9,780 nucleotides of DNA, taken from the sequence record NC_035464.1. The stretch is one strand, 5' to 3'. The notes beneath the pieces were generated by a model, which had not been told where the DNA came from, made no database searches, and was given only the letters and a program-made list of their open reading frames with translations. The position numbers were made by a program, and so were the translations under genes. Shown one piece after another: positions 3,367-9,780 of this stretch (position 1 is the first letter of the stretch; every line of letters starts with the position of its first letter).

Positions 3367-3674
3367 TCCATGAGGAGGTAACGTTTCATACTGAAGTGGA
3401 TGATGAGAGCGTAGAGGCAATCAGGAGGATCATAAGGGACCAGTGTGGAGAAAACCCAAAGCCTGAATGTTGGGGCCCGTTGGTGTGGTCCATGTTCGAC
3501 AGCGTGGCCCGTGCCATCCCGTGCCCAAAGTGCCGAGGGGAGGCACTGGAATTCCTGACCTTTTTGCATGATTTAATTAACATACAGAAGGGTAGTGCTA
3601 TATACAATACCCCGCAATTCCTTAGGAAGAAAAAGGAAGAGATACTGAGCCTACTCAGGACCCGAGGGATATAA
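3357..3674 (+). CDS. Miniature Erv1/Alr-like (poxvirus E10-type) sulfhydryl oxidase, 105 aa
   Basis: GTG start after GAGGTGA (3346-3352). Motifs NPKPECWGPLVW, IPCPKCR and FLHDLINIQKG match the Erv signature WGxxxW...PCxxC...HNxVNxxxG. The CDS is well supported; the function is inferred (about 0.65). Confidence 0.9.
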   Translation: MAIVHEEVTFHTEVDDESVEAIRRIIRDQCGENPKPECWGPLVWSMFDSVARAIPCPKCRGEALEFLTFLHDLINIQKGSAIYNTPQFLRKKKEEILSLLRTRGI

Positions 3675-4743: not shown

Positions 4744-4750
4744 TTTTTTA
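4744..4750 (+). terminator. T6 tract ending the core structural operon; possible promoter element for 4773
   Basis: TTTTTTA lies 19 nt after the TAA at 4724 and 29 nt before ATG 4773. Confidence 0.6.
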
Positions 4751-6967: not shown

Positions 6968-7378
6968 ATGAGCTGTCAGACATGTGGTCAGCAGGGCGTG
7001 TGTTACGTCCTGGAACACGTGGGTACTGAGCCCATCTATATAAACGGGCAACAGTACGGCCAGGGCGACTTTTGTTTCTCCTCCCCTGAGCTCACGATAG
7101 AATACCAGGGCGTACAGTACCAGATCGACATGTCCTACGCCCCCACAGTGCAGAACATATACGGGTGTTGTCCCTCAGGTACCACAGCCAAACTCACGAC
7201 GGTGACTACGATACAGGGACAGAACACTCCCATATTCGTCCCGTATGCCGTCCTAGTGTCTCAAGGTACCACGTCCACTAGTAGTACCACGCCTAGTGTC
7301 CTAAGTAAGGTACCGTGGTGGCTCATCATACTACTCGTCATACTGGGGGCTATACTCCTAGGAGGAGGAAACCCATGA
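6968..7378 (+). CDS. Cys-rich tail-anchored virion protein, 136 aa
   Basis: ATG 2 nt after the upstream stop; six Cys; Thr/Ser stalk; C-terminal TM WWLIILLVILGAILL. Confidence 0.9.
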   Translation: MSCQTCGQQGVCYVLEHVGTEPIYINGQQYGQGDFCFSSPELTIEYQGVQYQIDMSYAPTVQNIYGCCPSGTTAKLTTVTTIQGQNTPIFVPYAVLVSQGTTSTSSTTPSVLSKVPWWLIILLVILGAILLGGGNP

Positions 7379-8483: not shown

Positions 8484-8490
8484 TTTTTTA
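8484..8490 (+). terminator. T6 tract ending the second structural operon
   Basis: TTTTTTA 2 nt after the TAA at 8481. Confidence 0.65.
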
Positions 8491-8605
8491 GTCCAGGTCT
8501 CCCATTATACCTGAGCGGTGCGAGGTGGATGTGACGGGAGGCTCTGGGAATGTCCGAGAGACGGAGGCGTACCCGTCCTCCACTGCACCGCACTAGGTGA
8601 GTCAC

Positions 8606-8836
8606 ATGAGCCAAGTCCCAAAGAAGAGACTCGGGGCAAGGGTCATCAGAGCGGTTTTCAACGGGGTCTCCTTAGGCATCCTAGGAGGGGCAGGAGTGTA
8701 CGTCCTAGCCCAGGGGGTGAACACGTTATCAGGCACCACTACTTTGAACCCTACGGCGTTTCTCCTGTTGGTCTTGGGGGCGTCCATCACGGCCAGTGTG
8801 GGGATAGAACTCTCCAAGGACCTAAGCGGTGAGTAG
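8606..8836 (+). CDS. Small two-TM membrane protein, 76 aa
   Basis: ATG 8606 follows RBS AGGTGA (8595-8600); GTG 8597 is an alternative. Basic N-terminus and two hydrophobic helices (GVSLGILGGAGVYVLA; AFLLLVLGASITASVGI). Confidence 0.85.
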   Translation: MSQVPKKRLGARVIRAVFNGVSLGILGGAGVYVLAQGVNTLSGTTTLNPTAFLLLVLGASITASVGIELSKDLSGE

Positions 8837-8852: not shown

Positions 8853-8861
8853 TTTATTTTA
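8853..8861 (+). promoter_or_regulatory. TATA-like box for the apparently leaderless gene at 8885
   Basis: TTTATTTTA starts 32 nt before ATG 8885, the same spacing as the promoter at 9462/9430. It may also terminate the 8606 gene. Confidence 0.55.
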
Positions 8862-8884: not shown

Positions 8885-9124
8885 ATGGATGTCCAAACCC
8901 AACTCAAAGAATGGATTTCCCTGTTGGACGACAGGCTGTCGTCCATAGAAATGAGCCTCAAGTCCCTCCAAAAGAGACTTGAGCAGGCAGAAAAGCGACA
9001 AGAAGAACTTGAGGAGGCGTTCGACCAGCTGAAAGAAGAAATAGACGACTGTGTGGCTGACACGACCTACCTCCACGACGTACTGGAGGAGGTCCAAGAC
9101 GACATAGACGACCTAAGGAAGTGA
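8885..9124 (+). CDS. Acidic coiled-coil protein, 79 aa
   Basis: Continuous heptads (LSSIEMSLKSLQKRLEQAEKRQEELEEAFDQLKEEI); GTGA overlap with the next gene. Confidence 0.88.
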   Translation: MDVQTQLKEWISLLDDRLSSIEMSLKSLQKRLEQAEKRQEELEEAFDQLKEEIDDCVADTTYLHDVLEEVQDDIDDLRK

Positions 9125-9342
9125 GCCCCGTGGAGTTCGTATACAAGATCAACGACGACACGGTCACAGTGTGGGTCACTGACGAGAAGACGGGGAAGAA
9201 AGTGGCGTCCCTACAAATGCCGAAGAAGGACGTGGACTACGTCGCGAGACGTGCAATACAAGAACTCGACATAGCCCCAGATGAGGCATACGACTTAGCG
9301 GTCTACTTCACCTACGTTAAGGTCACCTGGGGCCTCCTCTGA
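9121..9342 (+). CDS. Hypothetical protein, 73 aa (beta-hairpin plus helices)
   Basis: GTGA-coupled start; typical codon usage; followed by a T6 tract. Confidence 0.85.
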   Translation: MSPVEFVYKINDDTVTVWVTDEKTGKKVASLQMPKKDVDYVARRAIQELDIAPDEAYDLAVYFTYVKVTWGLL

Positions 9343-9430
9343 ACCTCTTTTTTCTCTCGTACTTACCCCTGACCCTACGGTCAGGCTCTACTTCTCTCAC
9401 GAACCTGACTCCCCCATCCTCATCAAACAT
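9323..9430 (-). CDS. Small Arg/Lys-rich protein, 35 aa (MFDEDGGVRFVREVEPDRRVRGKYERKKRFRGGPR); not in the ORF track
   Basis: Translated by hand. The ATG lies 32 nt from the start of a perfect TATA box; codons (AGG/AGA, GAG, AAG, GTC) match the real genes; convergent 20-nt overlap with the 9121 gene. Confidence 0.65.
   Translation of the reverse strand: MFDEDGGVRFVREVEPDRRVRGKYERKKRFRGGPR
9348..9353 (+). terminator. T6 tract after the last + strand gene
   Basis: TTTTTT in a pyrimidine-rich context, 5 nt after the TGA at 9342. Confidence 0.6.
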
Positions 9431-9452
9431 ATGATTTATTTCACAGCAGGGC

Positions 9453-9462
9453 TTTATATAAA
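9453..9462 (-). promoter_or_regulatory. Palindromic TATA box TTTATATAAA abutting the right ITR
   Basis: On the - strand the sequence reads ttccgcaa-TTTATATAAA-gccctgctgtg-aaataaatcat-ATG: a canonical TATA, an AT-rich -10 region and near-leaderless spacing typical of Sulfolobales promoters. Confidence 0.75.
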
Positions 9463-9780
9463 TTGCGGAAGGTCGTGATGGGGGGGTTAAAATGCTTTTT
9501 GCCCTGTTGGAGAGAACCCTTCACTCTGAGGTTTACTTTCGGTTTGTGTCGTTAAGTGTACTTGCAGGGCGGGGCAGGGCGTATTATGGGCTGTAATTTG
9601 CTCATTCGCATTAGGACAAAAACCCCTGGGGTTAATAAGCTTTCATGCTAGGGGGGGTATTTAAACCCTCCCCGCGTTCAACTTGCGTGGTGATCCGTCA
9701 AACTGACGTGGCTTTTAAACCCCCTGCTCTGGGGGGGGTAGGCTAGGTCTCGCCCTCCCTTTCGGCATGGGGGGGGGGGG
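9463..9780 (-). repeat. Right inverted terminal repeat (318 bp)
   Basis: Reverse complement of 1-318 with two mismatches; ends in G12. Confidence 0.99.

Follow-up and report, generated by a model that had tools for sequence, protein, structure and literature searches.

A conserved gene of 35 codons, unannotated in both MTIV1 and MTIV2, very probably occupies the minus strand at positions 9323–9430 of the genome of Metallosphaera turreted icosahedral virus 1 (MTIV1). The window analysed is this complete, linear genome of 9780 bp (100% identity to MF443783 / NC_035464), whose ITR arms of 318 bp each, at 1–318 and 9463–9780, are 99% complementary to one another. The repeat is imperfect, and the few differences between the arms include 17 versus 9764 and 234 versus 9547, for example T versus C in CATGCTGAAAG / CATGCCGAAAG. 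All 21 annotated coding sequences of MTIV1 lie on the plus strand, and no annotated feature falls under the minus-strand frame in the MTIV1 and MTIV2 records (MF443783, NC_035464 and MF443784). Such a gene is mentioned neither in the MTIV3 paper (PMC10101205) nor in the 2026 MTIV4 preprint (doi 10.64898/2026.06.04.730037).

The coding sequence of the peptide, here called P0001, was delimited by its open reading frame and translation and by comparative codon tests; it opens with an ATG at 9430–9428 and closes with a TGA at 9325–9323 in the minus-strand reading, the stop codon being included in 9323–9430. The first-pass annotation had proposed a hidden, sole antisense gene at this place, encoding 35 aa with an acidic N-terminus and a basic C-terminus, and an ORF of exactly this composition is present at 9430..9323. 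The intact frame in relatives, an omega of ~0.17, the in-frame indels and the TATA spacing all point to a real minus-strand gene, and the word "sole" holds by current annotation. Taken as a whole, a missed coding gene with its own TATA box, a short leaderless or nearly leaderless mRNA and a two-part peptide product is the likely explanation, with transcription, start site and translation predicted from the sequence. The TATA box at 9453–9462 would drive a short mRNA, leaderless or nearly so, and translation of this mRNA would give the 35-aa peptide. The N-terminal ~25 residues, which are under purifying selection, would dock onto a specific partner, and the Lys/Arg tract that follows this core, free to vary in sequence, would be written in codons that double as the oligo-T terminator of the converging operon.

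Coding evidence for the minus-strand frame

On a T-poor minus strand, an open frame of 35 codons would be unremarkable by itself, and it is the comparative data that lift this frame above chance. MTIV2 is identical to MTIV1 over 9100–9493 and is therefore uninformative on the ORF. Relatives were collected by three routes that are independent of the peptide sequence. The capsid gene led to L003 and L004 (near-complete IMG/VR genomes, about 74% identical in this region), an ITR word led to L041, and homologues of the neighbouring b79 led to L131–L135, L137, L141 and L142. A 16-mer scan of metagenome contigs returned about 120 matches, almost all of them due to chance, with L041 as the only true relative; L005–L009, returned by an 18-mer scan of viral contigs, were chance matches and were discarded as relatives. 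Starting from the peptide itself, a profile search of 5.8 billion proteins gave 13 clusters (90% identity), and an exhaustive profile search of 1.84 billion representatives gave five matches, all of the same kind. Neither tblastn nor a profile search run over every frame of MTIV3 detected a homologue there, indicating that the gene is not universal in the group. The small minus-strand ORF30 and ORF33 of MTIV3, considered as candidate homologues, are unrelated.

The frame is conserved wherever it could be followed. All 14 distinct nucleotide sequences (about 20 contigs) are open and share the same Met-Phe start, and every relative contig that reaches the region keeps the ORF intact with the same ATG. 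Amino-acid identity of the peptide among relatives is 70–77%, similar to that of other genes, and its Arg codon use (AGG/AGA) matches that of the genome. Variable sites are distributed 9/10/20 by codon position over 23 gap-free core codons. Pairwise dN/dS ranges from 0.04 to 0.4, with synonymous sites near saturation (pS 0.4–0.7), and L004 differs from L133 by 10 synonymous and 3 non-synonymous changes. A GY codon model of all sequences gave an omega of 0.17 (2dlnL about 49–50, p about 3e-12 versus omega = 1); the ten sequences fetched without the peptide gave 0.16 (p = 6e-9). This coding signature lies in the portion of the frame outside the overlap with the converging gene a73. We conclude that the frame encodes a protein maintained by purifying selection.

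At least three events have altered the length of the ORF, some of them within an A-rich run, and all are multiples of 3. The sole 1-nt length change, in the L004 group, falls in the 32-nt interval between box and ATG, outside the ORF. Because this change also shifts the upstream frame, the coding region begins at this ATG rather than at a point deeper in the ITR. An in-frame upstream extension into the ITR was rejected, as were the N-termini called longer for P0016, P0017 and P0019, since the frame of the extension changes in the L004 group and it crosses the TATA box. Gene callers had already placed the peptide gene on metagenome contigs, with a length of 32–39 aa, or more in cases where they chose a start further upstream or a stop further downstream. 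The minus-strand genes of 70–76 aa called in L133, L134 and L136 are a separate matter and look like low-complexity antisense artefacts of a368.

Could the region instead be non-coding, composed of the terminator or 3′ region of the plus-strand operon and of ITR-adjacent cis elements for replication or packaging, with a frame that is open by chance? The minus strand is purine-rich and hence poor in stop codons, and the T6 terminator of the opposing operon lies inside the frame. Moreover, the DNA at 9344–9523 is more conserved than coding DNA, with 82.5% identity in L041 versus 67–69% in coding regions, and this unusual conservation of flanking non-coding DNA in L041 means that some nucleotide-level constraint is present. 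The ORF also contains a hairpin, CCTGACC-CTAC-GGTCAGG, at 9368–9385 (codons P-D-R-R-V-R), with a paired change in L004. However, the hairpin is lineage-specific and was rejected as a conserved element, as synonymous changes destroy it in L133, L141 and L142; its loss there means that it does not explain the conservation of the ORF. A chance frame would also sit poorly with three-periodic substitutions in exactly this frame (omega 0.16–0.17), with in-frame indels, with a peptide kept though synonymous sites are near saturation, and with retention of the gene in lineages that have no ITR beside it. The non-coding reading is strongly disfavoured, and we find it hardly credible.

The promoter-like box and the inner ITR

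A palindromic TATA box, TTTATATAAA, lies at 9453–9462 and adjoins the right ITR arm (9463–9780), its first base being exactly the first base outside the repeat, as had been described before. It is taken as the putative minus-strand promoter of the peptide gene. The left-end copy of the same ITR sequence (...CCGCAA) does run into AATAATT, in agreement with the first-pass annotation, and the A of the minus-strand ATG (9430) does stand 32 nt after the first T of the box in the minus-strand reading. The spacer from TATA box to start codon (9431–9452, minus strand) was delimited by comparing upstream sequences among relatives. The exact word TTTATATA occurs at two genome sites only, this palindrome and 7037–7044; allowing one mismatch, the genome has 10 matches versus 2.8 expected. 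The box is thus unusual but not unique, and its earlier rank as the best promoter in the genome is not decidable from sequence.

The spacing between box and gene is the more constant feature. In every lineage an A/T box starts 29–33 nt before the ATG, at −32 in MTIV1, −33 in the L004 group and −29/−30 in L144, L146, L147 and L150, and in these last four the spacing is kept despite unrelated flanks. Lineages without an adjacent ITR have the box variants ATTTAAAC, TTTTTTAG or TTTTTAAA at −29/−30, and all ITR-adjacent relatives share the first seven box bases in the minus-strand reading (TTTATAT). Since the box is found at −29/−30 also where no ITR adjoins it, the spacing belongs to the gene and not to the ITR. 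The bases at the BRE position, CCGCAA, come from the ITR and fit the consensus loosely by eye; other lineages have unrelated bases there. The ITR supplies the BRE-position bases in MTIV1, but it is not essential, as the gene in L144–L148 and L150 lies away from ITR-like sequence and has a different A/T box.

In Sulfolobales and their viruses, the TATA box is centred about 26–27 nt before the start site, and most first genes are leaderless. The peptide gene resembles such leaderless TATA/BRE units in having a box 29–33 nt upstream of the ATG, a start codon directly preceded by a pyrimidine (in all relatives), no Shine-Dalgarno sequence and the same spacing as the virus's own plus-strand genes, whose T-rich boxes in MTIV1 lie 29–32 nt before the ATG. 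It differs from them in that its BRE-position bases fit only loosely and change completely where no ITR is adjacent, and in that its start is a sequence-based prediction. We infer a transcription start at ~9430–9432, which would yield a leaderless mRNA.

Two observations concern the plus-strand genes. T-rich tracts (TTTTTTA, TTTATTTTA) are found at 2339–2345, 4744–4750, 8484–8490 and 8853–8861; those before c125, c225 and b79 lie 29–32 nt from the ATG, just past the preceding gene, and the tract at 8484 lies 122 nt before b76. Such tracts could act both as a terminator and as the next promoter. Several relatives have a b76 homologue called at 96 aa, with an alignment that begins at position 8582 of the window (8582–8836), and the annotated start is at 8606, suggesting that the start of b76 may have been placed too far downstream.

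The inner block of the right ITR (9463–9520), whose first bases occupy the BRE position, is conserved among relatives, and the rest of the ITR diverges. These innermost ~55 bp (9463–9520, mirror 261–318; TTGCGGAAGGTCGTGATG...TGTTGGAGAGAA) are near-identical in MTIV1, MTIV2, L003, L004, L041, L132 and L143. Between MTIV1 and MTIV2, the sequences are identical up to 9493, similar to 9516 and divergent beyond. As the block has no third-position pattern, it looks like a cis element for replication, packaging or factor binding.

A perfect palindrome beside a conserved block raises the question of whether the box works mainly outward, giving a plus-strand transcript into the ITR that would, for example, activate a terminal replication origin. 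A plus-strand ATG at 9492, 39 nt from the box, opens a 34-aa frame inside the ITR (9492–9596 on the plus strand, mirror 185–289 on the minus strand), and a similar frame was called in L143. However, this ATG is missing in MTIV2, L004 and L041, and the frame is for this reason probably no gene. The left end carries the same ITR without such a box, and where no ITR is adjacent, the peptide gene is nonetheless preceded by a box at −29/−30. Relatives also vary at the box end that matters for the plus reading (TTAATATAAA, ATAATATAAA), whereas the minus reading TTTATAT is constant. Mainly outward activity is highly improbable on this evidence, and we regard the box as a putative promoter of the peptide gene.

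The encoded peptide and its basic tail

The peptide has two parts. Its conserved N-terminal core of ~25 residues, with the consensus MFEDDGVKFVREVEP...RGKYE, is acidic and hydrophobic; no variation is seen at M1, F2, R12, E13, V14, E15, P16, R21 or G22, and Y24 is almost invariant. After about residue 25 follows a Lys/Arg tract of variable length and sequence, which is the least conserved part. Searches returned no Pfam family, no PDB match, no usable match in the ESM Atlas and a single chance-level match in PHROGs (E = 0.16). AlphaFold gave no confident fold (pLDDT 54), with a weak, low-confidence helix at residues 18–30. By these searches the peptide appears to represent a protein family without known relatives; a small gene missed by annotation is not in itself a new kind of thing. 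Like other small ORFs recovered by comparative genomics, it is below most annotation length cutoffs, is absent from GenBank/RefSeq and was found through frame conservation and dN/dS. Unlike the usual missed small ORF, it is the lone gene on its strand beside 21 annotated genes, and its Lys codons double as the likely terminator of the opposing operon.

Small basic nucleic-acid-binding peptides of viruses include the arginine-rich-motif peptides of lambda N and HIV Tat/Rev and the adenovirus core peptide mu. The peptide family described here is similar to these in size (32–40 aa), in a net charge of about +5, in its dense Lys/Arg tract and in its weakly predicted helix. In contrast, it has no sequence relationship to them, and its conserved part is the acidic and hydrophobic N-terminus rather than the basic tract. 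An arginine-rich motif combines a conserved basic helix with a conserved RNA hairpin target; here the tract is variable, and the only hairpin nearby, at 9368–9385, is lost in L133, L141 and L142.

The basic tail is also bound to the DNA of the opposing strand. The plus-strand operon probably terminates at a T6 tract at 9348–9353 on the plus strand, which lies six bases past the stop codon of a73 and in the minus-strand reading supplies Lys codons of the peptide. In L143, L144, L148 and L150, too, the stop codon of the converging gene is followed at 3–11 nt by the A-run in the peptide gene. The composition of the tail may thus be a by-product of the terminator or of the overlap with the converging gene. 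With the tail so closely coupled to the opposing terminator, and conserved less than the rest of the peptide, the argument for nucleic-acid binding is one of amino-acid composition. A small nucleic-acid-binding or regulatory factor, in which a polycationic tail contacts DNA or RNA and the conserved core docks onto a viral or host protein, is a tentative assignment with the balance tipped slightly against it.

The convergent operon and the place of the gene in the MTIV genome

The surroundings of the peptide gene differ among relatives. The MTIV1 layout of ITR, box and gene is common to L003 and L143. L144 and L145 carry two further genes, of 157 and 78 aa, upstream of the peptide gene and in its orientation; in L146 the genes in that position encode 397 and 63 aa. 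These extra same-strand upstream genes lie at L144:92–801 and L146:140–1521, and the 78-aa product matches phrog_28733. The lone gene on this strand in MTIV1 may therefore be what is left of a larger leftward module. In L147, L148 and L150, the peptide gene stands after a368 and b76, with which it shares a strand, and lies opposite an unrelated converging gene. This second MTIV-like layout spans L147:659–1055, L148:199–712 and L150:880–1249, with the peptide gene directly after b76; the converging 121-aa gene of L148 has no match in MTIV1, Pfam or PHROGs.

In MTIV1, the peptide gene and the converging a73 (9121–9342) share 20 nt at their 3′ ends, at 9323–9342, as seen when the ORF is set against the annotation. 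Overlaps with the converging gene measure 6–53 nt in L143, L144, L146, L148 and L150. The a73 gene has been lost in L003 and L041 and is absent in others, and the peptide gene is kept in all. Regulation of the convergent gene at 9121, which the first-pass annotation had offered as one role, cannot be the main one, as L003 and L041 lost a73 yet keep the peptide gene. At L003:9100–9140, the b79 homologue runs straight into the last a73 residues (..TWGLL), and at L041:4900–4960 about 9 a73 codons are left (a73 being 9121–9342 in MTIV1). L041 also has a plus-strand frame of ~51 codons that spans the whole peptide gene up to a TAA inside the TATA box, and this frame is not conserved elsewhere.

A broader form of the antisense idea makes the minus-strand RNA the main product and the peptide secondary; a cis-antisense transcript or head-on transcription would then control the converging late operon (a73/b79) at the level of termination or stability. 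The gene is always at a convergence point and overlaps the 3′ end of its converging gene, and its A-run is complementary to the T-tract terminator of that gene. Downstream of the peptide gene, the minus strand has no T5+ terminator before position 3630, almost 6 kb away, and a transcript could run antisense through a73 and b79. However, the amino acids of the N-terminal core, which lie outside the overlap, are under purifying selection, and the conservation seen comes with coding constraint. The converging partner also varies (a73, b79 or the unrelated 121-aa gene), and the peptide is kept with each. An antisense role as the main function is quite unlikely, and so is an additional role of the head-on transcript in terminating the main operon; the antisense reading can coexist with the coding one, and it cannot replace it.

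The coding reading itself leaves space for a more speculative arrangement, in which the peptide gene is interlocked with the terminator of the main (structural) operon as one unit. Head-on transcription, together with binding of the basic peptide to the nucleic acid made there, could then act as a switch between termination of the operon and run-on toward the genome end. We consider this unlikely. If true, it would be a very compact timing device in a 9.8-kb virus for which no regulator has been recognised on this side of the genome.

Among archaeal viruses, MTIV is the isolate with which its group was founded. Of its 21 annotated genes, to our knowledge, hardly any has been assigned a function, and we know of no replication or regulatory machinery recognised in it. 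A 22nd gene, conserved, alone on the opposite strand and with its own promoter-like box, would alter the gene map on which MTIV genetics is built. It would also be a cheap experimental handle, as no other gene overlaps its ATG and a 35-mer can readily be synthesised. In so compact a genome, the overlap of Lys codons with the opposing terminator would be a tidy case of one sequence put to two uses. The gene should be entered in the records of both MTIV1 and MTIV2.
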